A stretch of 64,000 bases of DNA from Bugula neritina (taxonomy: Eukaryota > Animalia > Bryozoa): NCBI GenBank assembly GCA_964035545.1, contig OZ037770.1, positions 8,872,973 through 8,936,972 of the forward strand, given 5' to 3'. Positions 542 through 64,000 of this stretch are shown here, one piece after another. The notes beneath the pieces are model-generated. The model made no database searches. It saw nothing but the letters and a program-made list of their open reading frames with translations, and was not told the DNA's origin. Each line of letters starts with the position of its first letter. Position 1 is the stretch's first letter. A program made the translations under genes and the position numbers.

Positions 542-901
542 ACACACACACACACACGCACACACGCGCACACACACGCACACACACGCACACACACGCA
601 CACACACGCACACACACGCACACACACGCACACGCACGCACACACACGCACACACACGTGTGTGTGCGTGTGTGTGCGCGTGTGTGCGCGTGCGTGTGCG
701 TGCGTGTGCGTGTGTGTGCGTGCGTGTGCGTGCGTGTGCGTGCGTGTGCGTGCGTGTGCGTGCGTGTGCGTGCGTGTGCGTGCGTGTGTGTGCGTGTGTG
801 TGCGTGTGTGTGCGTGTGTGTGCGTGTGTGTGCGCGTGTGTGCGTGTGTGTGCGTGTGTGTGCGTGTGTGTGCGTGTGTGTGCGCGTGTGTGCGCGTGTG
901 T

Positions 902-945
<44 letters not shown>
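542..945. repeat. Compound CA/CG microsatellite that inverts to TG/CG at 657/658
   Basis: (CACACACG)n-like tract followed by (TGTGTGCG)n, (TGCG)n and (TG)n tracts. Confidence 0.95.
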
Positions 946-5899: not shown

Positions 5900-6117
5900 G
5901 GGAGCAGCCGTGGTCTAAGGGCTAGAGCATTTGCTGAGTAAACACAAAGGTTATGGGTTCAAGCCCTGATAAAAGCCATTGGTGATGTTAAGAAGAGCAT
6001 CCAGTCATAATTGCTCCTGTGCCCCATCTAAATAATTCCTTAGCCCCTTTAACAAAAACCCTTTCCATCAGGGGTTTTCTCACAGGGATAGCGACTATAA
6101 ACTCGTGTGAGTTTATT
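5900..6117 (+). mobile_element. tRNA-derived SINE, family 1
   Basis: A-box-like GTGGTCTAAGGG, B-box-like GGTTCAAGCCC, body GCCATTGGTGATGTTAAGAAGAGCATCCAGTCATAATTGCTCC and tail GACTATAAACT; shared with other copies in the window. Confidence 0.7.
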
Positions 6118-7995: not shown

Positions 7996-9851
7996 CTACT
8001 TCTTTCTGAAGCCAAGGCCACTTTGAGTATCCCCAAATATCTTATCAGCCAGACTCAGCTGTCCCCTACCAGCTGACTTGGCATGAAGTTCTTCTTGTCC
8101 AAACTTCTGCGCTTTTTCTTGGCCACTTAGGAATGACTCAGCGCCAAACTTTAAAACATATTTTTATAGTTATTACTCTCTTTAGTGTATATGTTTCAAC
8201 ATGCACATGTCATCAAAACAGATGTGTCACCACACATACTTTACAGTAAAATATGTGTCTACATAAATATTTCAAGGTAGAAATATTGATGGCAAAACTT
8301 ACGTTCGCATTAAGGCCGCTGTCAACAAACAGATCTGTCGTGTCAAATGCTCCAAAGTGTTCAGCATTGGCAGCATCTATTCCGTTGTTCTCAATAATCT
8401 GGAAAGCACCATTATCCTTGAATCCTTCATTTGCATTGATTCTGAACGCCTGGTCACTGTGGGCTTCATCTTTGAAACTTAGAGCTGTGATAATAATAAT
8501 GATGGTAAAAATAAAATCATTTAACTAACTACAATGGTTGGTAATACTAGTACTAATACCTATTATCTTGTTTGATCGTTCAATTTGAAAACATTTATCA
8601 AATATTCAATTACCATCAAATAAAATGAAGGCAGGCATAAATCTTTCAATTAAGGCGTGACATAGACTGGCTAGCTTATGCATAATAATATAAGCTGAAA
8701 ATTGTACAAAACCTAATATATAATATATGTTGGTATACATTATATATAATAACTTCATGATAACATAATATAATGTATTGATTGAAATAAATATCATTTA
8801 ATAAAAGCTTATACGTATTATAATGAGGTAGCGTAAATATTGTATATAGCCCAGTATATAATATGAAGTAGTATAACATAAATACTGTTTGTAACCTCCA
8901 TTATAAAATAATAAAACATAAATATCATAGATACATGTAACTTAATATATAGATATATAGTACTTTTCAGGTTAAAAAGCATTATGTAAAAAATTATATA
9001 AAGATATAAATATATAATAAAATATTACAATATAGTGTAATAATACTATAACATAATATAATATAATGCAATATAATATGATAAAATATATATAGTATAA
9101 TGTATTAGTTGCAAGACCTTCAAATTACATAAAAGTTTAGGGATAAAACGAAACTGGGAGTTAAATTTTCTTTTCACCTGCAGTTTGAAATAAATATTTA
9201 TTATTCTAACTCAAGTCTAATAAATTTTGACTAACCTGTTGACTTTCCTCCTTTGTCACTGAGAGCTATGTTAGCATTTTGGAACTTAGCAGTGTTCCCA
9301 AGGACCTGTCCCTTACCATTGGAGAAGGCTCCCAACCTGCCCTTCTGGCCGGCTCTTACTCCTGCATTTCCTGATCCTTTCAATCGGTCAAATGCTTGCA
9401 GTTGCTGCAGGGAAATATGAATAGCTCGTTAGTCATTTTTTATATTAAAATTATAGTTTTTTATCTAAAAGTTTAGTCAAACATATAACTGCTTTCGCGT
9501 AAATTTGCTTTCAAAAACTATCAGCTGATAACCTTTTCATTTTGCTAAAAACTATATCTGTTTGAATGTTCAGATTTTCAAATAGAAATTTTTCTAGCAC
9601 GCAGTTTAAAGACGAACGGTTTCAGAGCTTTTAGTTTAAATAGAAACACTTACTTCTTGTTTCTGATCACCAGCTGCTAACTTAGATGCTCCTTGAAATG
9701 CCCCTTGACCAGAAGCAGCTAGACCTTTGTCAAACACCTCTTCTCCGACTATTTGAGATTGTTGGTTTATACCACCTCCTTGAAAGCCTCCAAGTTGTGC
9801 TTCTACACTACATAGTGCCAGTACCAGAGTGACCGCTATAAGGGGGTTCAT
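7996..9851 (-). CDS. Secreted mirror-symmetric family paralog A, 233 aa; coding exons 9851-9654, 9404-9236, 8484-8303, 8148-7996
   Basis: GT-AG introns with phases 0/1/0 and core exons of 169 and 182 nt. Signal peptide MNPLIAVTLVLALCSVEA|Q; ends ...SGLGFRKK*. Putative non-coding exon 1 ends at 10197, with TATATAAG at 10274-10267. Confidence 0.88.
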
Positions 9852-15402: not shown

Positions 15403-18400
15403 ATGAAGTGCGTCATACTGTTGCTGATTTTGGCAGTATTTATTCTCTCTGTAAACTCTCAAAGATTGCTTAGCCAAAATGATGGTTTAACTGCAGCGCA
15501 GAAAAATCTCGCCAGAAGACAGTGGCTCAATTCCTTGTCAGCAGGAGAAAGACGCGAGGAGCAAGCTAAACTCAGAGCTCAAAGAAAGCAAAGACGTCAA
15601 TTGGTACTTATATTTTGATGCATATTTGCTTCTTTAATCTAATAAATACTCAGTCTATGTTATGATAAATAACTGCAAGAAAACTAACAGTTTTTTTAAT
15701 TTGAGTTTAATTCCCGAAAATAATATTTTTGGATACATTCCTATGTGCTATAATAACTATTGTTTTTGTTAACTTTTGCTTAAGTTATGTAGTAGTTATA
15801 TTTTTTAGAGAGCAGAAAAACTAGCAAGAAGAGCAGAAAGAAAAAGACAAGCTCTGGCAGCACAAGAAGCTGCCAGACTTCGAGCTCAACAGCAGGCAGC
15901 GGCCGAGCAGTTTAAAAACTATCAAGAGCGAGACTTCATAGATGCTCACTATAACAAAGACAAAGCCAGCAAATTTGGTAAGAACTGCGGAATGAGAGCT
16001 TAGTGCACATCTGCCTTGTTATTATTTTTAAAATAAGTTGTATGCGAGTTCAAAAGTAAACCTATAGTTGATAGAAACAAAAGTGGTGGTTAGCCCAAAA
16101 AAGTAGTTGTTAGCAAAAGTCAGCTGGTTGAAAATAACTTTATGATGGATTGTCTTCGAGTGACCATTCAGGTCAAAAGCTGTATAGAATAACCGTAATT
16201 AAGTTTGTAATAAAGCAAGACTCGAAATGCTTGATTGGTTTATAACGTAGTAAAACACGCCTCTACCATCTGTCACCCCTTTATGTAGTAGGGAGAGCTT
16301 ACAGAAAATTAATGAGATAATATGTTGATCTAGAAAATTGACCTTAAATTGAAAGCAATAGTTGGTGATAAACAAAGCATCAATAATTTGCTTCTCTTGA
16401 TTCTTCAGTAAAATGGCAATTGCTCCTCAAAAAAATCATTTGCTTGTCTAATATACTTGAGTCATTTTACTTAATTTAGTACACACTGAAATCTCCAGTC
16501 TTTAGCTATTTTTCATACTTCAACTGCTAATGAACATAGCTTTTTGCTCAAAACTAGTAAAACACCAATAAATACACCAAAATAATTAAAGTTCTTTTTA
16601 ATTTTGTTTGATTTCCCATGTTTTCTCCCATTTATTTAGCTTATTAGAAGTGTGGGACCACTACGAAAAAACCGTAACAGCCCGCAACCAAAAGTAGCTA
16701 AATAATTAGAAAAAACCATGAAAAATAAAGCAATATTCAAAAAAACTTTGATTATTTAGGTGTATTTATTGATGTTTTATTAGTTTTGATTAAAAACCCA
16801 TGTTTATTAGCATATAGGCAAGAATACTTTATTCAAGTTAAAACTTACTCAACTCTGTTTAGTGCAGCCCTTTGGCAATATTCATAACATAGATACTTGG
16901 AACATTACATAGTTGATGAGTGCAGGACTATGACCAGCAAAAAAATGAAAATGGCTGAAAACTCTGCTAGGTAAAAATTATTCGAAATTTCTTAACAAAG
17001 CTTGCAATTATCAAAATTAAAGTCATAAGACAGAAATGTTTTGTCCTTCTATTTAAAAATAGTTTAATTAAAAAACGATGAGGTTAAACTATTTTACAAC
17101 GGAAATTTCGAATTTCGTCTGAGAGCAGAGATTTATTCAAACATGCTATAATTACTAGCTTTCACAAGAAAGCAAGTTTGCTTTTACAAATTATGAGTAT
17201 AGCGAGAGGTTTCCCACCCTTGAGACAATGGCATTGTTGATATAGCCACCACCACATAATTTTGTATTATTAGAAATAAATGTTTAAATGCTGTTCTCTA
17301 ATATATTTATAACTTGCCCTCTACGTATTTATAGCATTTAATTTTATTTGTAGCATACTAATAGTTCTCATTAAGTTTGATTCTTTTGCAGCTGTCAGCC
17401 TGTCACACGAAACTGCAGAAAGTGAAAACTTTGGAATCAAAAAGGGTAGCGGTTTGATAGATCAAGCTGGTTCTAAAGTCGCTATTAATAACAACGTTCT
17501 AGCTGAAACTCAAAGCAAGGTGAATGCTTTAGATGAAGCAGAAGCACTGTCTGAAGATCAAATTGCTCTTGCCGTAAGTATATAAAAAGCCTGAGAGTTG
17601 CAGTCAGTTTGCATTTAGAGTAGTTAAATAATCCTTGCAAACACCATTCATCTCATGTACCAGTTAGCATGCTATAATGGCATAATGCACTGATATGGGG
17701 TTAGAACAATAAAATATGAAAGTATAATATATGTTTGAGTGTGAGAAGCTGTGCTCTAGGGGTTAGAGTGTTGGCTTAGCTAACAGAAAGTCATGGGTGT
17801 GATCCCAGCAAAGACTATTTGTGACGCTAGGAGGAGCATTCAATCAATCATAATTGTTCTTGTGACACGTATGAATAATTCCTCAGCTTGCTTTACCCAT
17901 AAGGTGTTTCTCACAGGAATAGTGACTATAAACTTGTATGAGTTTTTTATATAATTGAATGTCTGAAACTTACAAAGAAACAGCCTATTACTCAACTATT
18001 CTTGCCTCATCAAACAAGAAATACTGTTTTTAAAACACCATCCGTTCTTATTACCTAATATTCTCTTATGCAAAAACTCTAATATTTTATATATTCAGCT
18101 TTTAAAACCTCATTTTAATTTAAAGCAAATAAAGAAAATTATATGACTCACACAACTTAAGCGGTAATAAGGATTATACCCTGTTAATCTTTCTTTACAT
18201 TTGAACTAAAGAGGTGATATATAATTCGTGGGAATATGCTTGCCCTTATCTAATGCTGAAAATATATTTTCTTCGGGTTATGTAATTACAGTATTTTTTC
18301 AGAGTTTTATTAACCATAGAGAGGGTGGGAGGATCCAATCACAGTCACTAATAAGAATTACATTTACAATTTAGTAGTATTTTTACTTTTTTAGTCATTT

Positions 18401-18766
18401 TATTGCATCACTTTCATGAAAAGTAAAAATTGTTACAAATATCTAATACTTGTAGAATTTTTATTCAAATATGCAGAGCATGTTCCAATTATTGGCTATG
18501 TAATTGGTATTAGTCACTGCTACGAGTGGTCGTTGATTTGTGCCATTAAAATTGCTCCAATAAGACAATATTATAGATAATACCAAAGACTTATCTAAAA
18601 GCTCTGTGCTGTGTTGTTACAGGCTGCGGAAGAAGATGAGGTGGGAGTAGATGCTGGAGTCCAAAGAGGTAACGAAGCCGTGCTCAACGCCATAAACAAA
18701 GGAGCTACAGAAGTATTGAGCGAGGAGCAGGCAGCAGCTTTAGGAGAGGCTATCATTGGGAAATAA
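15403..18766 (+). CDS. Secreted family paralog B, 231 aa; coding exons 15403-15603, 15809-15977, 17392-17573, 18623-18766
   Basis: Signal peptide MKCVILLLILAVFILSVNS|Q; 169/182-nt core exons; R/K-rich block followed by D/E-rich block; ends EAIIGK*. Non-coding exon donor CAG|GTAGGT at 14992. Confidence 0.88.
16525..16812. repeat. Imperfect inverted repeat of about 290 bp (foldback or MITE) in a gene B intron
   Basis: TGCTAATGAACAT...CAAAACTAGTAAAACACCAATAAATACACC mirrors GGTGTATTTATTGATGTTTTATTAGTTTTG...ATGTTTATTAGCA. Confidence 0.75.
17742..17950 (+). mobile_element. SINE family 1 copy in the last intron of gene B
   Basis: Collinear similarity to 5900-6117. Confidence 0.65.
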
Positions 18767-22611: not shown

Positions 22612-22817
22612 GTAAGAAGTTATGGTCTAGAAGTTAGAGCGTTTGTTAGCATGGGTTCGAACCCAACAAAGGCCATTGGTGATGTTAGGAAGAGCATTCA
22701 GTCATAATTGCTCCTATGCCCCATTTGAATAAGTCCTTAGCCCAATTTAACAAAAAAAACCTTTCATCAGGGGTTTCTCACTGAGATTGCAACTATAAAC
22801 TTGCAAGATTTGTTTAT
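22612..22817 (+). mobile_element. SINE family 1 copy
   Basis: GGTTCGAACCC B-box and the same body and tail as 5900-6117. Confidence 0.7.
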
Positions 22818-24559: not shown

Positions 24560-26440
24560 ATGAATGCGATATTGTCAGTTGTGGTGTTAGCCACTGCCAT
24601 TGTGTGCCTCTGTGAAGCGCAGCTACTCGGTGGTGCTGGCGGTGGTGTGGCTCTTGGCGGAGTGAACGCTTTAGAGGTCGGGGATCAGCACAATTCACAG
24701 CTGTCGGCTGGCTCTAGGGGTCTGGCCAATGAGCAACTTGGACTTGATGCAAGAACCAAAGATGCAAAGGTAAGTTATTATATATTATACAATATGATAT
24801 ACTGTACAATATAATATATAATATCGCTATATGTAATACAACACTACACATCATAATATTATCCTAGAATATATTGCATTATATATCATAGCACATGATA
24901 AAATAAAATTTGAAGTAATAAATGTACTAGAACATATAATGAAATGTAACAGATAATAGAATAGACTTCCTTAAATTTTAAAAGTTGTAAAATTCAATTA
25001 AAGTTATTTTAAAAGTGTAAAATTATATATTTAGAATTGTGGTTTTAAAAATTGGGTATTTACAACCTGTTACATAAATTTGTTTAAATATCTGTGCATT
25101 TTTCTCTATTTCAAGGTCACTACATTAAACAACATTAAAAAGAAGTTATAGTTGAGATATAAAATTTTTGAATTGATGATTTTTAATTAATAATGCAAGC
25201 ACACAAACAAAAAAGTGTCTAATTTCTCATGCACTAAGGTAAATGTTTTATAATCAGCTGTTCTATTGAGCCATATTTAAATTGTTAAAGAACAGCAATA
25301 TAATATTATTGTAGAAAGTGGGAGCGAGATCTCGTGGTGCTATAGGATCAAACAAACTTGCTAAAATTGACACTGCAGACAGACTGACTGCGAAACAGAG
25401 CGGTGGAGCAGAGGGATATGAAGACCTGCAGAAGTACAATACTATTGATACTGGTGGAAAGTCAAGCAAAGCTTCCAGAACTGGTTGGTATTTACAAATA
25501 TTCAACAACTGTGTAGATGAGCTTAAATAGAAAATAGATATAAATCTACTTACCTGTTGGTTGTAAAAAATGCTATTATCTGTAACATTAAATTGCATTT
25601 AAAATGTTAATGAAAAACTGACATTATACTTGCTAATATTTTATTAAGCTTATGAGTATAAATATTTTTTGTAGTCGTTAACATTGCGGATGATGTCGCA
25701 CACTCTGATGACTTTTATTTGAAAAACGATGGAGGGTTTGCAAACAATTTTGGTGTCAGAGTAGTAGCTGACGATGCCTTAGCTGCCGACACGTACGGAA
25801 ATGTAGAAGCTCTTCAGAGTAAAGATATAATTGCTGAAGATCAAGCCAACCTGGCTGTATGTACTGCTGTAACCTATTTTTAGTACTTCCAGTGTTGAAA
25901 AGAAATTATAATTTGCTGAAAAGAATCTATAACTCTGTATTTGATATTCCTCGTGTATAAGCATCAAATCTTGAAACATAATTACTAAAATTAGATAAAT
26001 TCATACATTTCATCTCCAATTGATTTTGGAATTTTCACTTAGACATTTCAATCACCCTCTAAATTTTGTGCTATGTGCTGTACATGCAACGCTTGCTTAT
26101 TCTATGTTTTAAACATTTACGCATGTTTTATAACTGCTGACAGGGTCTACAGCAGAGTCAGCTAAATGCTGTTGGAGCAGCTGAGAAACAAGATGAACAA
26201 TTTCTAAAGGGAATCAACCAGGGTGCAAGCAGCATTGCAGCTCAAAATCAAAATGCTTTGGACAAACAATTTGGAGGAAACATCTTCAGTCCATTTGGTA
26301 ATGGATTCGGTGGTGGATTCGGTGGTGGATTTAACAGTGGATTTAGTGATATATTTGTTGGTGGTGGTGGTGGTAGTTTTGGTTTAAACAATTTTGGAAC
26401 CAGTGGTGGCTTTGCGCCTTTGTTCAAAAGAAGGCGATAG
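24560..26440 (+). CDS. Secreted family paralog C, 285 aa, long Gly/Phe tail; coding exons 24560-24769, 25315-25483, 25675-25856, 26144-26440
   Basis: Signal peptide ...VCLCEA|Q; 169/182-nt core exons; tail FGNGFGGGFGGGF...FKRRR*. TATAAA at 24111 and non-coding exon donor at 24214. Confidence 0.88.
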
Positions 26441-35780: not shown

Positions 35781-37139
<1,359 letters not shown>

Positions 37140-38220: not shown

Positions 38221-40312
38221 CTACTTCCGTCCTTTAAACGGAGTAAACCCACCAAACGCATCTCCTGAGTGGCCGCCAAAACCATGAACCCCAAAGAATG
38301 GACTGCTACCAAACTCATTGAAACCTGATTGCTGATTGGCCTGCGCACTTCCTTCCGATCTTAAGAACTGGTCATTCTTGTGCACCGCATCGACAAATTC
38401 CTGATTGCTGTTCTCTCTGAGCTCAGCTGCACTCAGCACATCCTCATTACCAGCCTGTCAATATAACGACATGAAGTTGACAACAATAGGCAAGTGACTG
38501 CGAAAGACAAATGACTGTGATGGGCAGGTGCTTATAATGCGCATATGACAATAATATGCAAGTGAATGTAATGGAAACTGGGCTTATGAAAGACATGTGA
38601 CCATAACCAGCAAAAAGCATTTATAGCAATAAATTTAAATTATTTTAAGAATTACATAATTCAAGTGGTGATAACTAGGTATATGCATGTAACAATTTCT
38701 TTTGAGAATTATAACTGAAAACATAAGGCTTGCTTGTTATTGTATGTTAAATTTATAGCCAGTACAAGAAGCATCTGCTCTATTCACTACAGGGCTGGTG
38801 TTGGGGGTTTTAAGGACCAGCCATGTTGCTCATATAGGTCGCTGACTCTTAGACACCTACCGCTGCTGACAATCCATCCTCATCAAGAATCTCTGCTTCA
38901 TCTATCACTTCTGCATTAAAGAACTGAGTAGCATCGACTTCCTCTGCGTGTGCCAGTTTGGTGCCGGAGCTAGCTTTCTGTCCGTCATTTTGCTTAATGG
39001 CAGCATCTTCACTGTGGAGGTTCTCACTCACCAGGGACAGACCTGTGTCCAGGAAATATTATTTATATTATTTTGACTACCATATAAATCCCTCTGGTTG
39101 TTAGCTAATTGCTAATAATTAATTGCTTACTGTTTAATGCTCATTGGATCTTGTTTAAAGTATGTTGATAGTGAAAAACTGTCATTAGCTGTTTAGTAAA
39201 AGTATTAATGTATTATTAATTACCAAACCATATGATGATTACTTATTTGTGCACTAGAACTAGTTAAACAAGTTTTCAGCAAAGGTGCTTGATTTTGCCA
39301 ACAAGCAGCTCCAAGTTGGTGCAGTGGCTAAGTGCAGCAGTTTGGGATCTCGAGTTTGGAGTTGGAAGTTCAAAGTTCCAAGTTAAATTTCCAACTCCAA
39401 ACTTGAAACCTCAAACTAGTGCACTAAATCACCTCTAAGTCAGGGCTGCTTATAAAAGATTTCAAGCTACTCAATTCACAAATTTTCAATGACTGCCACT
39501 TGTAAATTTTCAATAACCTGTCATACCTACCAATTTTGTTTTTAACATTTTTATTGGCTTCTGCCTGCAAGTTATTGAATCCAGCGGCGTTGTCAAATTG
39601 TTCAAAGTCTGTTCCCTTTGAAGCTTTCAGTTTGGCAGCTTCTTCCTTTGCTAGTCTCTGATTTTTTCTTTCTTGTCGACGTCGTTTTTTATCTATTCGC
39701 TAAATTTACCAATGATATGCGACTAAGAATTCAACATGCTCTGTTTTTCAATTTAGGTGAAGTAGTAAAAAGATCAAAATAGATCAGACTTTTAAATTTA
39801 CTTTAAAACTTTTCATTTGGGCTCCATGTTGAGCAACGCTAATTTTATTACAATTCTAATTTGCTTAGAACACAGGCTTTTGTTAATTTCTCATTTGCAA
39901 AGCAAATTTTTAGTGCAGAATAAAACTATTTATATAACTATTTCTATGTCAATTGAGTGATTTAGACAAAAATAAGGAAAATTTGGTACTACAAGTAATA
40001 AACAATCTTACTTTCACGACCTACTTAATGTGGATCAAACAATGACACATATTGTAGATATAAATGTGGATACAATCGTATTCTAGTGTAACTTACTGCT
40101 TGCCGACGAGCTTGCTTATCTAGTCTAGCTTGTTGGTTGTTAGAGTTCTTGGCGCCAGTCTTAAGAGAGTTGCCATGCTGATGGGCTGCTTGAAGGCCAC
40201 TTGAAAAGGTATCTCTACCGACAACTTGATTCTGCCGACCTACTTTTTGACCTTGACCTTTTAGTAACACGCATGTGATCAGAATGCCAAAAGTTATTGT
40301 TATCTTCTTCAT
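38221..40312 (-). CDS. Secreted family paralog E, 266 aa; coding exons 40312-40097, 39699-39531, 39042-38861, 38454-38221
   Basis: Hydrophobic N-terminus MKKITITFGILITCVLLKG; 169/182-nt core exons; Gly/Phe tail ending FTPFKGRK*. Non-coding exon ends at 40635, TATAAA at 40725-40720. Confidence 0.88.
39303..39451. repeat. Imperfect hairpin of about 150 bp in a gene E intron
   Basis: AGTGCAGCAGTTTGGGATCTCGAGTTTGGAGTTGGAA pairs with TTCCAACTCCAAACTTGAAACCTCAAACTAGTGCACT; ends are AAGCAGC and GCTGCTT. Confidence 0.75.
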
Positions 40313-42580: not shown

Positions 42581-44456
42581 ATGAACAAAGGGTCTGTGCT
42601 AGTAATGTTGGTGGCAGCATTAGTTCTTGTGGAAGGCAAGACACAGTTGAAGAGGAGAAATGGCAGTAAAGCTGCAGCTAATGTCGACAGAGTGATAGAG
42701 AGTAGAGGCGGAGAGGAACTGTTACAAGAGAACTCTCTGAAAGCCGGAGATAAATTTTTAGATGTTTACCAAGCTCTGCTGCAGAAGAAATCCGATAGAG
42801 ATGCCGTAAGTCTTTGTTCTGCGTCAGGTTGTTCTATATATTGATTAGAAAGCATAGTACCCGTGTCTACTACAGTCCTATGCCCAAGTTGTTACATAAA
42901 CCATGAGCAAACCTTCACCATTTAGCTTTCTGCATGATACCAGTATAGCCTCTTCGGAACTAAAATAGATTATTATTGATAAAAACTCCATCTCTCTTAA
43001 TTAAGCCATCACTATTGCTGAGCTATTAATATAAAGCAATTATTATCAATTAAAAATAGATTTTTAGCTGCTTCTATAGCAAGTTAGGTATGCCAATTAT
43101 GATGTTGCAAGTTTTCAATGCCTTTATTAAAAATAATTGCGCGTTCATCTTGATTCATCAGAGACTAGCTAAGAAAAGTGAGAGACAAGAAAGGAAAAAG
43201 CAAGCACTACGAGCAGCACAGGGAGAAAAGCTGCAAGCAGAAGCGGGTCTAGATTTTGAAACCTATGACCAGGCCGAAAAGTTCCACAATTTGGAAGCTG
43301 AGGCAGGTCGAAATGTGGCAAACCGATTTGGTAAAAATATTTATCTAAATATTACTCTCAAAGTAATCCAACAAACATATCTATGCTTGTTAATTAAAAA
43401 ACTCAAAATCAATTGAAAAATGCCGTGGATAAAAAAATTAATGTAATTATGATGGTTAAGCAGACAGCTAATTTCATGACAATTGAAATGCTTTATATAG
43501 AAGTAAACTCAAAATGTATGTAGAATATTTTAAAGTGTGTAAATTAATTTACAGAAATAATTTAATTTTTAAGCAATGTTTTGATTAAGCAGCATGATAG
43601 TGCAATTATAAAAAATTGTATTTGATTAAAGAGCCTTTCACATTATTCATACAATATGGCTGTATTAATGAATAATACTCCAAATAAGTATAGCTTTTGC
43701 GACTTCTAGGGCTACAGATCTTGAGTGAAAACAGCCACAATGAAAATGCTGCCATTAAAGAGAATGCTGGAGCTAAGGCAGCATCTGGCACTAAACTCCG
43801 GGCTCATGAAGCTGTTGACGCTGCAATGACATCAGATATTGAAGCACTGGATGAAGGGGAATACGCTGACCAGGAAGGTCTTGATGCCGCGGTAAGCTGC
43901 CACCTGTGTTATGTTCATATTGCTCTTGTGAATTAGGTTTAATTATAGAAACACCTACTTCTTGCTCACTTAAGGTTTCCTTCATGCTGAGAAATGATGA
44001 GCTAGTATTTAGTGAAGATATGTTTGTGCTTTTTAATTCATCATATGTATGTTATAGTTATAATTTTGTACTTGAATACATAGCATGTATTGAATGCAAC
44101 CTAAAAGCTATAGCAAAATAATATATTTCAGTTAGAGTTACAATCACATTTACTTTCACACATCACTAGATAAAACGTATAGAGAGCATAGAGTATTTAT
44201 AATTTGTTCTAAAGATATATTTACAATTTGTTCTGTATTGAAGGCATCAGACTCAAATGCACTCAACGCCCAGGAAGCAGCAAAAACTGAAAGAGAGGCA
44301 TTTATTGACGCTCAGAGTTTAAATGCCAGGAGTGGTGCATTTACTGACAACTTCTTTGGTGATGATAACTTTGGGGGAGCTTCGTTTCAGCCCACCAATA
44401 GCCTTGGTTTCTTTGGTGGCAGTTCTGGTGACTTCTTCAGAAGAAGAAGAAAATAG
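42581..44456 (+). CDS. Secreted family paralog F, 262 aa; coding exons 42581-42805, 43162-43330, 43710-43891, 44244-44456
   Basis: Signal peptide MNKGSVLVMLVAALVLVEG; 169/182-nt core exons; ends GDFFRRRRK*. TATATATAAG at 42091 and non-coding exon donor at 42195. Confidence 0.88.
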
Positions 44457-46004: not shown

Positions 46005-48170
46005 ATGACAAGGCTGTGCCTGGTGACAGCGTTGATGCTCTGTCTCCTAGCAACTGTCAGCAGTAATGTGGGCAGACTACGAAGTGCAGTGGGTAAAGGT
46101 GGAGCAGCAGTGACAGGTGGGGAAGTGGGGAAGGTCAACAGCTTGCAAGCTGCCGCGTCGTCAGGGAATCTGCTCAGAGCAAAACAGGCTAATGCTGACA
46201 GGCAGAAAGCTCTTTTGGATCGCAAACAGAAAAAGCAAGCTGTGAGTCTATCCATTGTATTACATATTATATTATATTGCATGCATTATGTTACATTTTA
46301 TTATGAAACTTTTTCTTACATGATCTTGTTTTTATTATATCTGTTGGGGCCATGCATTTCATCTTGTATTATGTTTAATGGTATATTAAACCCTATATTA
46401 TTTCATATAATGACAAATTTTATTATATATTATTTTATTAAATTGAAATTTGCATTATGTCATATTTTTTCATGCTAAATTTTAATTAATTATTGATGCA
46501 TTTTATTATAACATATTATACATGTTGTATTATGTATAATATATAATTATGTAGCTATATTCTGTAGCTACTAATTAGAAAATATCAGACTCTCATAGAA
46601 TTGCAACATAAATTTGGTGAATTGTTCCACATGGCAAGTTCTTAATTAGATCTTGCATAACACTCAACCAGAGTAGAGTATGTTTACTGGCTTGCATTTA
46701 GTCAGATTCTAAAAAGTGTTCTACTATACTTCTGCTAAAGTGTACAACAAAATTTTGACAAAGTTTTTCAAATTTCTCATCAATTCACAAGTTGCTAATA
46801 TTACAACTTCTCAAAAAATCAAATGCGCCAATAACCTGGCAACTAATCAATTTCATCTAATTTTGTTCAGCTATTTAAACATTTGTTTTATTTTTTTAAA
46901 GAGACTCGATAGAAAAGCAGCTAGAAAGGCAAGAAGAAAGGAAGGGGCTAAGGTTGGCAATGGAAACAAGCTAAAACAAGGAAATGCTGTAAACTTCCAA
47001 GAATATAACGATGCACAGAAATTTAATAATTTAGATGCAGCTGCAAAGTTGGACAAAGGAAATAAATTTGGTAAAATTAGAATTAATCACCAATAAATCT
47101 TAACCTAATTGCATATCTCTTACATTTTCATACCAAGCTTTTTGATTTTTCTATTCAGAATTTTCATTTAGTATTTTATAGGTAATAATGGTGATATATG
47201 TTTTTCTTTGATGATACAATTTGCTATTCAGGTATACAACTGCATTCGGAAGACTTTCACAATGAACATGCTGGGATAAACCAGAACGATGGATTCAAAA
47301 CAGGCAATGGAGTGCAGTTTTCAAACAAAGAGTATGTTGACACTGGTTTCTATGACAACGTGGAAGTCATAAGTGATGCGGAGGCCTATGACGATGAAGT
47401 TCTAAGTGCAGCGGTAAGCACTTCAGACATGATTTCATTAACTTGACGTTTAACTTATGAAAATTGGCAGCAAGCAGCATATCGAGTTTTTACTAACTAT
47501 CTGCTGTCAGCGCAAGCAGGAAGTTGAACTTAGATGCAATTGTTCAGCAAAAAAATTTAAAGTAGCTTATGTGTAGTTAATTGTTAAATTTCCATTCTTA
47601 TTCAAACACAAAATCAGTAAGTTTTAACTTGTTTTCAATGCTGCCAAATGCAACAATTATATTTGACTTTGTAGAAATTTAAAAGAATTTATTGTAAGAA
47701 GAGTTTATATATATTTATTAAAATAAAATAGCTAGGATCTTCGATTAATGAGAACTGTTTAGAATAAAAGCTGCTAAATTCTAAAATGCTATAGGTTTTT
47801 ATTTTCTTGTAAAATTATCTTTTAAGTTAAATATTTATATTAACTCTTTGATTCAGCGTTAAAAACTAGACTGGAAACAAAATTTTGAAAGTTGGAGTGC
47901 TGACAATTTATTCTATATTTGGCTGTTTTAATCAATTTTATGATTACAATGACCATTTATGTTAATGCATTGCCTGTTTTGTTCCAGGATGCTAATGCAG
48001 AAAGCATTAATGCAAACCAGGAAGTAGTTCACAATAATGAAGCTCTCTTAGACACAAAAGTATACGATAATAACAGAATTGAAAACTTCAATCATTTTGG
48101 GAATCAGCAAGGGTTTGGTCAATCTGACTTTCTCAATTTTCAGAACGACTTTGGAGGCTTTGGCTTTTAG
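46005..48170 (+). CDS. Secreted family paralog G, 256 aa; coding exons 46005-46241, 46902-47070, 47232-47413, 47988-48170
   Basis: Signal peptide MTRLCLVTALMLCLLATVSS; 169/182-nt core exons; Asn/Phe/Gly tail ending DFGGFGF*. TATAAA at 45495 and non-coding exon donor at 45610. Confidence 0.88.
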
Positions 48171-54300: not shown

Positions 54301-54669
54301 AAACAAACGCATAATAATTTCCTTAATTTGGCAGCATTGCATTGTTTTAATTACCCAAGCAATTAGTGAATGCACAGTTTCACAATAATAGTATAAAAGA
54401 GGTTTTAAATTTAATAAATGCATGGATGTTCTACCAGAGAATATTAAGTTTCTATTTTTTAAAGTGTGAGAACTTTTTTATTGCAGACATTGTTGCATTA
54501 TAATAAAAATATCAAAATACAGACATTCAACTCTTACTATATGACGTATTAAAAAACTTGTAAAAGTGTGTTTTATGTGTCAATATCTAAAAGAGTTTTA
54601 ATTCAGATCAGCTTTGAATGTAAAACGAAGATCATAAATATAAAAATACAGCTGTTTACTATTAAAGGT

Positions 54670-56650
54670 TTATGCTTTTGTGATCCATACTTCGTTATGT
54701 CTCTTGAAGTAGACCCGAGGACCATCATAACCTGCTGTGAAGAACATGGGGTCTACAGTGTAGGAATTGCCGTCTTTAGTCAAGTCTTTCTTAAGCTGTT
54801 CAAACTCTGGGATGAATCTATTTCCAAGGATGTAGTACTTTGGTGGAAGTATTGTGTTGAATGTTCTGAAGTATGAAAAATAATTGTTATTATTATTCAC
54901 ACAGGTTGGGGTTATGCAAAACATAATATAACTCTATATATATTCTATTAGTATGCTATAATATTTTTACAGCATAAATAATAGTACTATTGTTTTTGCT
55001 TTGTGCATAATAATTAGAGTTTACTACTTATAGTTTAAAAAGGCAACAATTCGTGGTATAATAGTTATTTCTACTGAAGAGGAACTACAAAAAAAATTTT
55101 CCAACTAATTGAATATGACAAAGCTATATCATATTTTGTTTAATTGGAATATTTCAAATAAATCTGCTCAATACAACATAAACAACAGTAATTTACTACA
55201 TTTTTTATTTGAAAATAAGTATGATATTGTAAGTTATTGGTGCAAAAACTCTCACAAATATATTATGAAGTACAATTTAGTAGTTAACAACTTACAAAAT
55301 ACAAGTTACATATGACTAATTGTTTGTAACAATGTATTGCATTGGATGACACAGCCTATACTAGTTTAATGCTAGTTATTTTAAGTTAATTCAAAGAATA
55401 TTCTAGTCTGAGATAGTTCGTAAATTGGCCATTATACAAATTATTAAGGATATTCTCACCTGACATAGAACTGTGCTCTTGGAGCTCTGTGAATGAAAAC
55501 GCTAGCGTCATTTGGTGTTGGAGTATTCTCACTGAACTCACTTGGAACCATGAAACTCATGAACACAGCATTCTCTGAATGACTGGAAACCACTGGAGCT
55601 GTCATCTTCATAGTTTGATCTATAATTACATATAATATAAACCGGTTACAAAATGCCAAACTCAATTATTGCTAGATGTCACACATACATGTTGACAGAT
55701 GTCACATTCACCTGTTTAAAAGTGTCACACTAACATTTTACTATAAATGTCACAATTGCATACGCATTAATAGATGTAAATGATTATTTCAGGTGGTTGT
55801 CTATTTTTCTTATAGTATGTGAAGTAATTTTGAATCTCTAAGTCTATATACCGACCAAGCAGTAAATCTTAAAGGTCAAAAGGTCACAATAAATTGCATT
55901 TAGTTCCACTCACTCATGTTATTGGCTCCACTGATGTAGTCAAACAGTTTGAAGAAAGCTGGTGAGACTGAAGTTCTATCTTCCCAATACTTCTTCTCTA
56001 GCCCATCCATCTTTACTGAAACCCAGACTGTAGGGGCGTAATCTCTTAACTCATAAGTCTGCAAGAATATTTAGGTTGATTTTAAGGATAAGCTTGAAGA
56101 CTTTCAAAATTTTATTGCTATTTTGTATATACATATTTACAAAATAAAATAGTTAAGTACAAGCCTTCTGTTTTATCAACACTTTAAATGCTACAGTCAA
56201 AAAACTCAAGTAGGTACATTTGGGACAGATATTTAAATTATAGTCAATTGCTTTTGATAAGTTATATAGGAGCAGCAATGGAGAAGTTGATAAAAGCCTG
56301 TGTTCTAGATAAGAAATTTAGCAACAGAAGCCAAGCCAAGATGTGTCAACAGAAATTAAATAGCTTAGACTATTACAATTTCTCTACCTGAATGCATGCT
56401 GCTTTTTATGTAAAATCAAATAACAAGCATAAAGTACTTTATTGAGAAACTACTGAACTAAGCTCTTAAATTCTGTTACAAGAAAGTATTTACCATATGA
56501 CATGAAATGTTGCTAAAAAAACTAAAATTTACTTACATCAAAGTGTTGAATTACTTCATACTCTGGACATTCGTGGTCTTTACAGAAATCAGGAGCTGAT
56601 AGAACAAGCTGTGAGAGAGTGAGAGAGATGACTAGTAGTAGAAGTGCCAT
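54670..56650 (-). CDS. Secreted SOUL/heme-binding protein family member (HEBP2-like), copy 1, 204 aa; exons 56650-56537, 56058-55914, 55619-55460, 54865-54670
   Basis: Signal peptide, FCKDHECPEY, YELRxY, AFFKLFDYISGAN, MKMTAPV, PTPND..VFI, FYVRTF and AGYDGP...RHNEVW are characteristic SOUL-domain motifs; canonical splice sites keep the frame open. Confidence 0.9.
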
Positions 56651-57653
56651 GTTGTGTAAGTAGATGTCACTGTAGGTAGTTGACACTGGTCTGCAGGTAG
56701 TTGAATAATGACAAACTCACTATGTTGGCTGTTTTATAGTGACAGGTTATCAATGTTATATAAGCTGAGCAAACACTTCTGTTGGTTTACACCAAGCCCT
56801 TGCCAAGTGCAATTTAAATTTTTTACATAACAAATGATCACGTAAACTGCAAGTGTTATGCATATTGTTACAATATTATATTATATATTATATTATTATC
56901 ACGATTTGTAAATTAATCGGTGACAAGAGGGTGCATGCAAAGCTATATTTAAAAAGGCATTTTAGAGGCAAAATGGCCAACACAGTATGTATTTTAAAAC
57001 TGTTTTATAAATATTGCATGGCTCTATAAATATTTCCAAGAAAAGGAAAAATTAAACACCAAGTATCAATGATCATTTATTTTATTTATCTGTAATTTAG
57101 ATCTGTATTTACAAAAGCCTGGATAAAAAATAAAAAAGAAAAACCGTAAACCAAAAATTGCGGACATTAACCATGCAGGTACGATGAACGATTATAAGCT
57201 GTATAATACATAAATAACTATAAAAAAGTAGCTTGTCAATTCAGTAAGTGCTAAAAATAAATATCAATTTCACTGTAGTCTTTTTTGTGCATTGAATGAG
57301 AAAATTAGTTAGTAAATAAAAGTTATGCAAGCCTTGAAATTTAACGTGATACTGATAAGTGATGTGTGAGGTCACGTTCTACACAGCATGTGTGCACTGC
57401 ATGGGAGTATTTACTGAGCAGGCACCAGGTTGAGATAACCAACTTTAATTTCAAATTTATGCTAACAACTTTCTATTTATATAGTAAGGCAGCACGTGTA
57501 TAACAAGAAGGGGTCATAATATGGTACATAGTATGATTCATGATCTTTTGCAATTTATTAACAAGATAAGTTGTAATTGTGTAAAACTTTATAACAGAAG
57601 TTGATATTGGTTCTAGCTTTTTGTATTGTAGGATACACTGCAACGTGTCATTG

Positions 57654-57943
57654 CTGTCTGCTATGAATTTAGGCAAAATGGCACAGGTAATAATGGTGCA
57701 AATGGCAAAATAGATAAAAATCGCATATAGACGTTAACTTTTTTCAAACCTCAAACTCAAACCCATAACCCTTTAACCCCAACCTCAAACTGAAATACTC
57801 ATTCCAAACATCTAACCCAAACTCTTATATTGAAAATGGGTTATTTTTACCTACTTTGCCATTTGTGCCATTATTACCTGTGCCATTAATACCAGTGCCA
57901 TTTTTACCTGTACTATTTTACTGGTGCCATTGTTACTGGACAC
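57654..57943. mobile_element. MITE-like foldback with AATGGCACAGGTAA subterminal arrays; related copies at about 62499-63144 and a left half at about 392-540
   Basis: Repeated AATGGCAC units on the left, GTGCCATT units on the right, and an (AACCC/AAACTC)-rich spacer. Confidence 0.65.
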
Positions 57944-59447
57944 TCCCTGCTATATGCCATGGAATGAAATTAGCTGCTATAGGTATTGAACCAGCATGGT
58001 GATATTATATAACCTTTATGATGTTTAAAAAGTTGCAAGGTGTCTCTGTTGATTAGACTAATGTAAAATGAGGGTAGTGTAGTACTACCCCTAGGAAGTT
58101 TAAGGGCTGGCAGATTCCAGGAACTGGAGTTCTGGGTGGGATGTAGTATTGTTTTTCACTCATAGTGTAATGGATAGCACTCTGGTTTGTAAGTTAAAAG
58201 TATGCAGTTAGATTCCTAGTGAGGGTAGAAATTTTTACAACTGAAGTCCAAGAGTTTTGAGGATGTTATTGAGTATAATTATTTCATCAGAAGTATCCCA
58301 AAAGCTGTAGACCTTGAAAGTATTGGCAATACATTTTAGTTTAAACATGGTTAGCATGCTGCACACAGGAGAGAACAAAATTATTATATATTAAAAATAG
58401 TTTCTTTGAAAGCCTAAACTAAAGTGACATAGCATTAGAATTTTCATTCATGATGTGAGAAATATAAGCCAAAGACCATGTTAGCGATAAGTTACAACCA
58501 ACATTCTTATAGTTCACAGGCTATAAATATCTACCTAAAACAAAATATATACCTACTAAGCTGCGACTATGTATATTTGCTTGTATAGTAATACTAGTGT
58601 TTCATTTGTAGTAGAAAATTTACAATATTATAATATTTTCCTATTGAGTATAATGTAGAGTTGTGTCCTCAATCCAAGAAGCCATGTTGGTCATTAGAAA
58701 ACTTAGTATTAATGCCAAAAACAAAGAGTATTGCTGAGCATTGAAGGCACGGAGCTCACATTGTTCTCAAAGCTTTCTGTACTAAGATAAACTTACTATA
58801 ATCCATCATTTTGATCTAATATATTGTTGTAATTGACAAAGTGAATGCTGCAAATAGAAACTAACTTAGTCATAATCAGTTAGTGTTGAGACAGAAATCA
58901 CATGAAGTACAAAAGCACGTAACATCATTTGAAGAGTAAATAAGTAAAGCAAAATTCATATAAGGTACACTTCGGCAGGTAATCAGGAAAAGCCAGAGAG
59001 CATAATATAGACTCGCTGTCGGAAGTCTAGATTAGCTGGAGCTAAGCTATGGTATATAATATCTATATAATATGTTATTTTGCATTCTATATTATATTAA
59101 TGTATTTCAAAATCATTTTAAGTTTCAAGAAACTTTGATGAAGTTATTTTGGTTCTTGAAATAATATAATGAACTTTTAAGTAAATAAATTATAACTATT
59201 AAGAAACCTTTTAAAGTGTTATAATGTTTTATTGTAGATATTTTATCATACTAAAAACATCAAAAATATATATATACAATATTAAAACATTTTTACTTCA
59301 TACATTCAACTCCTACTATAATATGTATTAAAAAATTATAAAAGTGTGTTTAATGTGTCATCATTTGAAAGGATATTAAGTCAGATCGGCCTTGAATGTG
59401 AAACGCAGATCATAAATATAAAAACACAGCTGTTTACTATTGAGAGT

Positions 59448-61482
59448 TTATGCTTTTGTGATCCACACTTCGTTATGTCTCTTGAAATAGACCCGAGGAC
59501 CGTCATAACCTGCTGTGAAAAACATGGGGTCTACAGTGTAGGAATTGCCGTCTTTAGTCAAGTCTTTCTTGAGCTGTTCGAACTCTGGGATGAATCTGTT
59601 TCCAAGGATGTAGAACTTTGGTGGAAGTATTGTGTTGAATGTTCTACAGTATGACAAATAATGGTAGCTGTCATTATTTACACATATTTGGGTAATCTAA
59701 TATGCTAATATGCTAATCTGTTAATGCTAATATTTCTTTAGCAAGGTTTAAATGCCACTACTTAGTTGAAGACATGTAGTTTCTCATTGCTATTGTACAA
59801 ATAATTCAACAGTAGTTATAGTGTTTTCCATATATTTTGCCATAATAATTAGAGTTTACCAGTTTGTTACAAAAGATCATGGTTTGTGGTATCATGAATA
59901 GTCATTTCTACTCAAAAAGAATTATACAAGATGATATTTCCCACTAAGAGAATATAATAAATTTACATCAAGTTTTGTTTGACAAAAATAATTTTAAAAA
60001 ATCTTCCCAATAAAACATTAAAAAATTGTTTTTCTAATCTAAAAATAAGTATGATTATAAGTTATTGGTGCAACAATCATAGCATTGTATTGCATTGAAT
60101 CAATCAACTTATGCTAAAGCAATAATAGTTTCTATAGGAATCCAAAAACTATTCTAATATTCTAATAGGGTACGTAGATAGGAATGTATAATTTCATTGA
60201 AATATTCTCACCTGACATAGAACTGTGCTCTTGGAGCTCTGTGAATGAAAACGCTAGCGTCATTTGGTGTTGGAGGATTCTCACTGAACTCACTTGGAAC
60301 CATGAAACTCATGAACACAGCATTCTCAGAATGACTGGAAACAACTGGAGCAGTCATTTTCATAGTTTGATCTGTAATTATATAATATAAACCTGTTAGT
60401 AGATGTCAGTAAAACATGTCACTAGATGTCACATCTACCTGTCACTGGATGTCACACTAACATACTACTAGATGTCATAAATATACATTAATAGAAGTGA
60501 ATGACTATTATAAATGCTTGTCTATTTTAATAGTATGTGAAGTAACTTTGAATCTCTAAGTCTATATAGTATTCTGTTATCTTATATTTTAGCATATTGT
60601 TATTATATAATATAATATATTATATAATAATAATATGTTGTTTTATCTATTAAATACTCCAAAAGTCAGAGTAAATTGAATATAGTTCAACTCACTCATG
60701 TTATTGGCTCCACTGATGTAGTCAAACAGTTTGAAGAAAGCTGGTGAGACTGAAGTTCTATCTTCCCAATACTTCTTCTCTAGCCCGTCCATCTTTACTG
60801 AAACCCATACTGTAGGGGCGTACTCTCTCAGCTCATAAGTCTGCAAGAATATTTAGATTGAATCTAAGGCTAAACTCGACGACTTTCAAAAAATTATCAA
60901 TATCTCAACTTGTATATACATATTTTACAAAACAAAATAGTCAAGTATAAGTTTTTGTCATACCAAAATTTAAAAATGTATACAGTCCAAAAGCTTAAGG
61001 TCATTATGAGACAGTTATTTATAATAGAGTCAAAATGCTGTTGATGTTACAGGTGCAGCAATGGAAAAGTTGAAAATAGCCTGTGTTCTAGATAAGAAAT
61101 AATGTAGCTACAGAAAATCTTTATGTTAAACCAGGGCCCCAAACTAAGCCAAATTTCATCAGCAGGAATTAATTAATAGCTTAGAGCCTTGGACTAGTAA
61201 AATTTCTCAGCTGTTGCACCAAAATGCAGGCTGCTTTTTATGGAAAATTAAATAACCAGCACAAAGTATTTTAATAAAAAACTTTTAAATTCTCCTGCAA
61301 CAAAGTATCTATCATATGACTTGAAATTTTCCAGAGCACCAAAAAATGTGACAATAAAATTTACTTACATCAAAGTGTTGAATCACTTCATACTCTGGAC
61401 ATTCGTGGTCTTTACAAAAATCAGGAGCTGCTAGAACAAGCTGTGAGAGAGTGAGAGAGATGACTAGTAGTAGAAGTGCCAT
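59448..61482 (-). CDS. Secreted SOUL/heme-binding protein family member, copy 2, 204 aa; exons 61482-61369, 60840-60696, 60371-60212, 59643-59448
   Basis: Same exon sizes as copy 1 (114/145/160/196 nt); I count 4 amino-acid differences. Confidence 0.9.
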
Positions 61483-62690
61483 GTTGAATAAGTAGATGTC
61501 ACTGTAGGTAGTTGACACTGGTCTGCAGGTGGTTGAATAATGACATACTCACTATATGTTGGCTGTTTTATAGTGAAAGGTTATCATTGTTATATAAATT
61601 AAGCAAATACTTCTGTTGGTTTACACCAAGCTCCTGCCAAATGCAATTTAAATTTATTGCATAACAAAATTATGATCATGTAAACTGCACGTGTTATGCA
61701 TATTGCTACAATATTTTATTATATATTACATTATTATCATGATTTATAAAGTAATTGGTGGCAAGAGGGTGCATGCAAAGCTGTATTTAAAAAGGCCTTT
61801 TAGAGGCAAAATGGCCAACACAGTATGTATTTTAATATTGTTTTATAGATAATGTATGACTTTATAAACATTTCCGAGTACAGGAGTAAATAAACATCAA
61901 GTATTAATGATCATTTATTTCATTTATCTATAATTTAGATCTGTATTTACAAAAACCTAGATCAAAATAAACAAGAGAAACTGTAAGTTAGAAATATTGC
62001 TGACATTAACCATACAGGTACAAAGAATGATTATATCCTGTGTAATATATATGTAACTATAACACATTATTTTTTCAATTCAATAAGTACTACAAATAAA
62101 TATAAGTTTCACTGTAGATAGTCTTTTTTGTGCATCGAATGAGAAAATTAGTTAGTAAATGAAAGTTATGCAAGCCTTGAAATTTAACGTGATACTGATA
62201 AGTTATGTGTGAGGTCACGTTCTACACAGCATGAGTGCACTGCATGAGAGTATTTACTGAGCAGGCACCAGGTTGAGATAACCAACTTTACTTTCAAATT
62301 TATGCTAACAACTTTCTATTTATATGGTGAGGCAGCACATGTAACAGTACTGGGGGGTCATAATATAGTATGTAATACGATTTGTAATCTTATGCAACTT
62401 ATTAACATGATATGATTTAATTGTCTGAAACTTTATAACAGAAGTTGATATTGGTTCTAGCTTTTTATATTGTAGGATACACTGCAACGCGTCACAGCTG
62501 TCTGCTATGAATTTAGGTAAAATGCCCCAGGTAATAATGGCACAACTGGCAAAGTAGGTAAAAATGGCACATTGTTGCTACATTTCTTCAAACCTCAAAC
62601 TCAAACCCATAACCTTTAAACCCCAACCTCAAACTGAAATACCCATTCCAAAACCTAAATCTTATCCCAAACACCTAATTCAAACCCTTA

Positions 62691-63055
62691 AGACCTGGCC
62701 TCACGATCGTGAGAATCACACGAAATTGTGTGACGATTTTCGTGAGTTATGACCAGTCACACACTTGTCGGACAAAACACATAATAAACAGTCCATGAAT
62801 GAGTCTTGCATGAGGTACAAACAACAGGAAATTGCCAAATAGAGAAAAGTGGTAGAAATAGAATAATTGCTGTTGCTAAAATTCTATTGACCAATCAAAT
62901 GGTACTTATCGATTGTGATTTTTTGTCCATCGTCATCGTTGTGTACACCCAACAAAGACGATTTTGTTTGAATTCCCTCAAATTTTCTCGTACGATTGTG
63001 TTTTTGTGTCAAATAGACGATTTCGTGTGATTCTCACGATCGTGAGGCCAGGCCT
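62691..63055. mobile_element. PIF/Harbinger-type MITE with TTA TSD, nested in another MITE
   Basis: TIRs of about 36 bp (AGACCTGGCCTCACGATCGTGAGAATCACACGAAAT and its reverse complement); TTA on both sides; empty site TTA at 57825-57827 in the paralogous duplicon. Confidence 0.85.
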
Positions 63056-64000
63056 TTACATTAAATATGTGTCATTTTTACCTACTTTGCCATTTGTGCC
63101 CTTATTACCTGTGCCATTTTACTGGTGCCATTGTTACCAGACACTGCCTGCTATATGCCATGCAATAAAATTAGCTGCTAGGTATTGAACCAGCATAATG
63201 GTGATATTATATAACCTGCATGATGTTTAAAAAGTTGCAAGATGTCTCTGATGATTAGACTAATGTAAAATGTGTGTAGTGTAGCACTACTCCTAAGAAG
63301 TCTAGGGGCCGGTGGATTCCACAAACTCACAGAATGTTATGGAGGAGGGCACTGAAGTTCTGGGTGGAATGTAGTGTTGTTTTTCCTTCATAGTGTAATG
63401 GTTTGCACACTAGTTTGCAAGTTAGAGGTATACAGGTTGATCTTCAGTGCAAGAGGTTAAAGGTTTTTGCAACTGAAGTCTTTGCGTTATAAAAATGTTA
63501 TTGAGTGATGTATTCATAATAAGAAGTATCCTAAAAATTGCAGACCTTGAAAGTAATGGCAATATGTTTTATTTTAAATAACTGACAAACATGGTTGACG
63601 TAATGCACACAGGATGGAATAAAACTATCATATAAAAAGGAGCTTCTTTGGAAACCTAAACTAAACTGTTATAGTATTTGAATATTCATTCATATTCTGA
63701 GAAATAGCCAAAGAGCATTTTAGCTAAAAGTTTGAATCAATATTCTTATAGTTCACAGGCTAAAATAACTAAAATAAAATAAATACACCTTATAAGCTGT
63801 GACTATGTATATTTACTTGTATAGTAATACTAGTGTTTCATTTGTAATAGAAAATACACAATATAATATTTTCCTATTGAGTAAAATGTAGAGTTGTCTC
63901 CTCATTCCAAGAAGCTATGTTGGTCATTAGAAAACTTAGTATAAATACAAAAAACAAAGAGTATTGCTGAGCATTGAGGGCAGGGAGCGTACATTGATTT

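Follow-up and report, generated by a model that had tools for sequence, protein, structure and literature searches.

Which structure can be encoded by a gene whose protein appears to be self-complementary when it is read from both ends? The question is raised by gene F, located in a stretch of 64,000 nucleotides of the Bugula neritina genome (hereafter the window; it belongs to contig 6 of the 216-Mb genome). A sequence-only reading of this stretch had proposed that residue i pairs with residue 116–i about Leu58, and that the product is either an intramolecular β-hairpin or a two-fold antiparallel assembly. The proposal was examined here on gene F together with its paralogues and homologues.

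Gene family

Seven spliced paralogues (A–G) were rebuilt in the window, with GT-AG introns, open frames and conserved exons of 169 and 182 nt (Table 1). Two more are present outside the window in the same Bugula genome, namely H on C3 and I at C6:5.36 Mb. Gene F, a predicted model of four exons with GT-AG introns, encodes 262 aa. The products of A–G begin with a hydrophobic N-terminal signal peptide (judged by eye), followed by an N-arm that is basic (+3 to +15) and a C-arm that is acidic (–9 to –16); the C-termini are mostly F/G/N-rich tails whose last residues are basic.

Table 1. Gene F, its paralogues and other features of the window (positions are those of the window).
Feature	Position	Strand	Description
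Gene F, exon 1	42581–42805	+	signal peptide (~19 aa by eye), then a short basic leader and the first part of the basic N-arm (residues –24 to 0)
Gene F, exon 2 (169 nt)	43162–43330	+	residues 1–56, basic arm; Y35 at 43264–43266, F41 at 43282–43284
Gene F, exon 3 (182 nt)	43710–43891	+	residues 57–117, centre and acidic arm; invariant G77 (43769–43771) and G83 (43787–43789)
Gene F, exon 4	44244–44456	+	end of acidic arm (to about residue 142, codon 44316–44318), then Phe/Gly/Asn-rich tail and polybasic C-terminus
Symmetry centre of F	43712–43717	+	L58, centre of the diagonal hydrophobic register (116), and Q59, centre of the lateral one (118)
Paired core of F	42731–44318	+	residues –24 to 142 (167 aa), without Pro, Cys or indels
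Paralogue A	7996–9851	-	4 exons, 233 aa, most divergent
Paralogue B	15403–18766	+	4 exons, 231 aa
Paralogue C	24560–26440	+	4 exons, 285 aa; centre of β-branched and small residues only, without Gly
Paralogue D	35781–37139	+	3 exons, without the third intron, 243 aa
Paralogue E	38221–40312	-	4 exons, 266 aa
Paralogue G	46005–48170	+	4 exons, 256 aa
SOUL genes	~54500–63996	-	tandem pair of genes for SOUL heme-binding proteins; duplicated unit of ~4.8–5.2 kb, blocks 78–97% identical
Microsatellite	36452–36726		perfect (AC)137, occupying the larger part of intron 2 in paralogue D
Compound arrays	542–942		CA/GT
Dispersed short repeat	5971–6058 and 22668–22755		88 nt, 86% identical; similar sequence also in L021 and L022; a probable small interspersed element

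The annotated hypothetical proteins KAF6021675, KAF6021676 and KAF6028931 of Bugula neritina are near-identical to genes D, E and H. The public model of gene D (P0003, KAF6021675) lacks the whole of exon 2 and the greater part of exon 1 and is probably a mis-prediction rather than a short isoform. When 1.84 billion proteins were searched with a profile of the family, 19 matches were obtained; they come from Bugula, Watersipora subatra and marine contigs, together with one bacterial repeat protein matched over 14 positions. The family is conserved across two cheilostome superfamilies: in Watersipora several copies are clustered, and their exons have the sizes seen in Bugula; the 169-nt size of exon 2 is also common to metagenome contigs. 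Metagenome scans with single queries gave 0 and 4 loci, and many of the homologues in marine samples are transcript-type contigs. Such contigs are intronless and carry collinear full-length homologues. For one of them (P0036 type) a genomic counterpart was found (L046) whose introns occupy the same positions, so that the exon junctions are supported in a homologue; a search for an RNA run at the gene F locus found none, and the splicing of F is a prediction. In a second sample, the sequencing run of which behaves as genomic DNA, 12 of the 13 exon differences of gene F among the best-supported differences listed are synonymous, and the family is under purifying selection.

Some members carry additional N-terminal parts. 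The first exon of paralogue I (G000:C6:5358700-5366060, minus strand; L022, L023) has ~1200 codons and encodes a signal peptide and Thr/Pro/Lys/His mucin-like repeats, placing ~1150 aa ahead of the putative ribbon domain. F-like homologues of other bryozoans (L029:10001-10522, L030:2598-3143; P0018, P0063, P0064) are extended N-terminally by Thr/Ser-rich or Arg-rich sequence, in which triple-Arg motifs resemble convertase sites.

Neither exons nor full-length homologues gave a match near the cut-off in Pfam and NCBIfam, and the ESM Atlas gave no usable feature match or cluster for the family. In the literature searched, the coverage of which is incomplete, neither a paper naming the accessions of the family nor a description of it was found. 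The cluster appears to encode a so far undescribed family of secreted bryozoan proteins.

Two mirror registers

Residues were numbered from the first residue of the 169-nt exon, and all registers k = i+j were scored in the seven window genes, in 12 held-out sequences from outside the window and in a set of 20 sequences (median identity 33%). For the null distributions, whole columns were shuffled inside local blocks, so that both the relatedness of the sequences and the charge gradient were retained; parity was preserved and the maximum over all registers was taken.

The hydrophobic pairs demonstrate a sharp peak at k = 116. The seven genes contain 60 of them at this register against ~24 at other registers (P<=2e-4, column shuffles), and 57 of the 60 fall on even residues. 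The peak was repeated in the held-out sequences (100 pairs, null maximum ~70, P<=3e-4), and the set of 20 gives 147 pairs on even residues. Covariation of hydrophobicity, calculated with column means removed, also falls at 116 on the even face (z=3.6). This part of the sequence-only reading is well founded: all 15 anchors listed for F, L58 among them (codon 43712–43714), and every listed residue pair are present, and the absence of indels and proline extends to the core of all 20 sequences, which also lacks Cys. The symmetry of anchors about L58 holds for the residues that were listed, but the conserved Y35 and F41, omitted from that list, are asymmetric at 116.

In contrast to the hydrophobic residues, the charges have their main peak at 118, and 116, where it had been placed, was not confirmed as their register. 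The charges of the seven genes peak at both, with 71 opposite-charge and 2 like-charge pairs at 118 (P<=2e-4, column shuffles, maximum over registers) and 61 and 3 at 116, so that the single like-charge exception mentioned for 116 becomes three over the full range. No shuffle reached the 134 opposite and 11 like pairs found at 118 in the held-out sequences, whereas their charge signal at 116 is weak or not significant (P=0.03–0.64). On odd residues of the 20 sequences, 157 opposite charges stand against 4 like charges at 118. The conserved pairs include K/R55–E63, E33–K85, R11–E107, K13–E105, R17–E101, R/K-17–E135 and K-21–D139. Aromatic-Gly pairs on odd residues follow the same register (69 at 118 and at most 30 at any other in 20 sequences): Y35 and F41 face G83 and G77, both glycines being invariant in this set. 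Like charges are avoided at 116 as well as at 118, on both faces, and no such avoidance is seen at 114 or 120.

The covariation of charges locates the register independently of conservation. After centring of the columns it is significant at 118 only (z=5.6, reached by 0 of 3000 shuffles, both faces); at 116 in the same 20 sequences it is not significant (P=0.67–0.85). Comparison of 10 disjoint sequence pairs gave 49:14 compensating to non-compensating charge changes at 118, 29:24 at 116 and 35:14 at 114. The charge changes are compensatory at 118; the examples quoted earlier for 116 have no statistical support. When the stretch from residue –44 to 57 (~100 residues) is divided into five segments without overlap, 118 is also the best of 17 registers in every one of them. 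Scoring against shuffles has therefore divided the proposed single register into a hydrophobic peak at 116 and a charge and covariation peak at 118. Most likely, the true lateral register is 118, which puts the symmetry axis at residue 59, and 116 is the diagonal hydrophobic register.

Self pairs score above cross pairs between paralogues (10.1 vs 6.6), which indicates that the partner of a chain is either the chain itself or another of identical sequence. The cross scores are still positive, so mixed assemblies of paralogues are possible.

Periodicity, centre and composition

Hydrophobicity and charge both have their dominant period at 2.0; period 2 is significant in all segments (P<=0.05), and a two-residue alternation of faces is present. 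A heptad in the apolar/Ala pattern (periods 3.4–3.7) is not enriched, either overall (P=0.97) or in any segment (P=0.81–1.0). The salt-bridge columns have a secondary 3.6 component of 0.32 vs 0.50 at period 2. Pairs at 118 occupy all seven heptad positions with a 3:1 preference for odd residues, and paired positions recur at i and i+2 (11/13, 33/35, 39/41/43/45).

Residues 56–60 follow the pattern hydrophobic-x-hydrophobic-x-hydrophobic in 20 of 20 sequences, and 56, 58 and 60 form the most conserved hydrophobic cluster, exactly at the symmetry centre. Positions 58–60 contain no Gly, Asp or Pro; position 57 is Gly in 13 sequences and Ala, Val, Gln or Ser in the other seven. His66 and Glu68 of F (window 43736–43744; residues 66–68), located on the even face near the centre, are conserved in ~17 of the 20 and could form a metal or inter-ribbon contact site. 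With 17% Ala, 10% Glu and only ~13% of V+I+T+F+Y the composition is poor in β-formers and helix-prone.

Introns 1 (42805/43162) and 3 (43891/44244) of F follow residues 0 and 117, which are mirror positions under i → 118–i, and exons 2 and 3 comprise exactly the unit 1–117 centred on residue 59. The same placement is found in A, B, C, E, G and the Watersipora copies; D has no intron 3, and the introns of H and I are located differently from those of the window genes.

Direct similarity between exons 2 and 3 is weak (offset 62, hhalign probability 29%) and may be a trace of an old duplication; the mirror covariation lies beyond its reach. Autocorrelation at lag 14 has z=2.6. An inverted or mirror repeat of DNA was rejected as the origin of the symmetry, since the corresponding identity in the CDS (0.28–0.35) is not above background.

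Antiparallel pairing and its possible forms

It is known from PDB surveys that Glu-Arg/Lys and aromatic-Gly pairs favour hydrogen-bonded sites. The family shows anti-diagonal covariation at one lateral register together with a diagonal register two residues lower (K=118 and 116). In model β-hairpins, pair 4-9 is lateral and pair 2-9 is diagonal through the right-handed twist, i.e. K and K–2 (PMC9268152); this geometry matches 118 as the lateral and 116 as the diagonal register. Antiparallel β-pairing in some form is very probable, and a long pairing of this kind is supported by the period of 2, the absent heptad, the recurrence of salt bridges and aromatic-Gly contacts two residues apart (i and i+2) and the compensation at 118. 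What is supported of the earlier structural proposal is the antiparallel β-pairing itself, with its axis most likely at residue 59 and not 58.

The form that we favour, with about an even chance of being correct, is a two-fold homodimer. Nearly the whole mature chain would be one continuous β-strand running antiparallel to a second copy about a two-fold axis at residue 59, so that on either side a basic N-arm would be zipped to the acidic C-arm of the partner chain. The odd face would carry the salt bridges listed above and the aromatic-over-glycine contacts Y35–G83 and F41–G77, while on the even face Leu and Ile of A-x-L-x-A motifs would meet diagonally (i+j=116) through the right-handed twist. 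The core of F (–24 to 142) at 3.3–3.4 Å per residue corresponds to ~55 nm as a dimer and ~28 nm as a hairpin; a twisted rod of ~165–200 residues would measure ~55–69 nm. Such rods would probably bundle via hydrophobic patches every 6–14 residues and the FG-rich, basic-ended tails into an extracellular material such as a fibre, a cuticle, a glue or a scaffold of mucus. The basic arm, being helix-prone, may represent a soluble storage state that converts on secretion.

The dimer is preferred to a hairpin because the centre has no turn motif. In the hairpin, both registers would lie within one chain, with the 55–63 salt bridge closing a seven-residue hydrophobic loop and with arms of 80–100 residues (~28–34 nm). 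All the covariation evidence fits this arrangement equally well, and the compensation within genes and the frequent G57 speak for it. However, a tight 3:5 turn needs turn-formers at 58–60, where residues of Leu-Gln-Ile types are found, position 57 departs from Gly in seven of 20 sequences, and the conserved cluster at 56, 58 and 60 is what a two-fold contact would predict; we regard the hairpin as rather unlikely. The symmetry might also involve no contact code and arise from the basic-to-acidic gradient, a palindromic A-x-L-x-A repeat, shared ancestry, or inverted or direct duplication of DNA. The exon 2/exon 3 similarity and the lag-14 autocorrelation agree with this, but the local parity-preserving shuffles retain gradient and phylogeny and still fall short of the peaks, the centred covariation strips conservation and still peaks at 118, and the CDS has no mirror identity above background. 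The symmetry as a mere by-product is refuted by the held-out peaks, the centred covariation, the disjoint-pair contrasts and the segment test, and an origin without contacts can hardly be correct.

Two further arrangements would also produce two registers. A multi-stranded sheet, or a closed barrel or tube, with one neighbour of every strand at 116 and the other at 118, implies a two-residue shear per strand pair, as in cylindrin and 14-stranded pore stems. It is consistent with the avoidance of like charges at both registers and with the top sequence resemblance in the PDB, a stretch of iota toxin Ib/CdtB (whole-sequence E 0.003–0.2) that we take to be the barrel stem. Against it stand the absence of charge covariation at 116, an even face too rich in Lys, Arg, Asp and Glu for a narrow barrel, the lack of a membrane-spanning apolar belt (H66, E68 and N64 are near the centre), the per-domain E of 0.4–1 of the toxin match and the presumed position of the Ib turn, which puts the centre of the match ~5 residues off. 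Such a sheet is distinctly unlikely. An antiparallel α-helical coiled coil or helical hairpin, as in Ala-rich insect silks, with core a-d' pairs at K=116 and g-g' salt bridges at K+2=118, would by geometric reasoning predict both registers as well. The Ala/Glu/Lys/Gln-rich composition, the contrast at 114, the 14-residue spacing equal to two heptads and the helix that AlphaFold places in the basic arm (pLDDT ~90, with low overall confidence) point in this direction, but the missing heptad, the spread of the 118 pairs over all heptad positions with an odd preference, the contacts two residues apart (i and i+2), which do not fit on a single face of a helix, and the invariant G77 and G83 make it very unlikely.

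AlphaFold2 did not reproduce the pairing. With a 13-row alignment the monomer of a full-length homologue (pLDDT 57.6, pTM 0.24) contains no β-structure and a long helix in the basic arm; the centre modelled with a 13-row alignment (pLDDT 51.2, pTM 0.13) has no β-structure either, and the Atlas model (pLDDT 0.45) has only generic long-helix look-alikes. The composition, poor in β-formers, and the 3.6 component of the salt-bridge columns also speak against β-structure. Our reading is that this failure can be accounted for by the shallow alignment, the monomer-only prediction and possibly a helical storage state.

Comparison with known systems

Long antiparallel β-pairs are known in pore stems, phage needles and designed peptides. 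The PDB sequence search gave only the weak iota Ib/CdtB match, one designed protein and one short further match. Homology to a PA/iota/CdtB pore component is not supported, the similarity being limited to a single stretch of ~68 aa (per-domain E 0.42–0.97) with no Pfam match. The stem hairpins of the β-pore-forming toxins to which this weak top match belongs (iota Ib, CdtB, anthrax PA family) do resemble the structure proposed for the family in being long proline-free antiparallel pairs with alternating faces and a conformational switch. Unlike them, the bryozoan proteins have no receptor or prepore domains, their arms are about twice as long or longer, and the pairing region makes up the whole protein. 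The even face near the centre holds N54, S62, N64, H66 and E68 where a hairpin tip would carry an apolar membrane-facing belt. Because of this and of the weakness of the Ib resemblance, a pore-forming role is unlikely.

The six-stranded tip needles of T4 gp37 and the αB-crystallin cylindrin are elongated antiparallel β-rods with periodic hydrophobic layers, as proposed here, but they have no sequence match to the family, which is several times longer and has one lateral register supported by covariation. Bee and mantis coiled-coil silks share with it the small clustered gene families, secretion, Ala-richness, absence of indels and a size of ~25–30 kDa; in contrast to these silks, the family has no heptad and appears to be selected for the mirror β-register. 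Helix-prone precursors of β-fibres are known from the α-to-β biomaterials of whelk egg capsule and dreissenid byssus. Alternating faces, Glu-Arg/Lys cross-strand pairs, Ala-richness and the K/K–2 geometry recur in EAK16/RADA16, MAX1, P11 tapes and model hairpins (PMC9268152). Those designed β-peptides are synthetic, repetitive and 12–20 residues long, whereas the present chains are natural and non-repetitive, have 165–200 residues and possess one unique register. The literature searched, which covers the field incompletely, yielded no natural secreted protein built entirely as one self-complementary, non-repetitive strand as long as this.

Possible function

These proteins probably act outside the cell as structural rods or fibres of the cuticle, the skeletal matrix, an adhesive or the mucus, as indicated by the signal peptides, the clustered family in two cheilostome superfamilies, the FG-rich and basic tails, the marine transcript-type contigs and the mucin-like extension of paralogue I. 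The family and its covariation code are observations, and the novelty of the ribbon depends on the structure that we infer from them. We see somewhat less than an even chance that the family represents a new animal structural class, in which a self-complementary non-repetitive chain, stored as helix or coil, would form a two-stranded β-ribbon homodimer of 55–70 nm and build bryozoan cuticle, glue or mucus, the paralogues differing in end modules (mucin stalk, FG tails).

If this is true, the ribbon would be among the longest continuous β-strand pairings in natural proteins and a β-counterpart of the coiled coil as a rod motif, readable straight from sequence. It would also provide a natural strand-register code made of lateral salt bridges, aromatic-over-Gly contacts and diagonal Leu pairs, missed by AlphaFold here, and a template for length-defined protein nanorods. 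No description of the matrix proteins of fouling bryozoans was found in the literature searched, and the family offers candidates for structural components of their body wall or adhesive.
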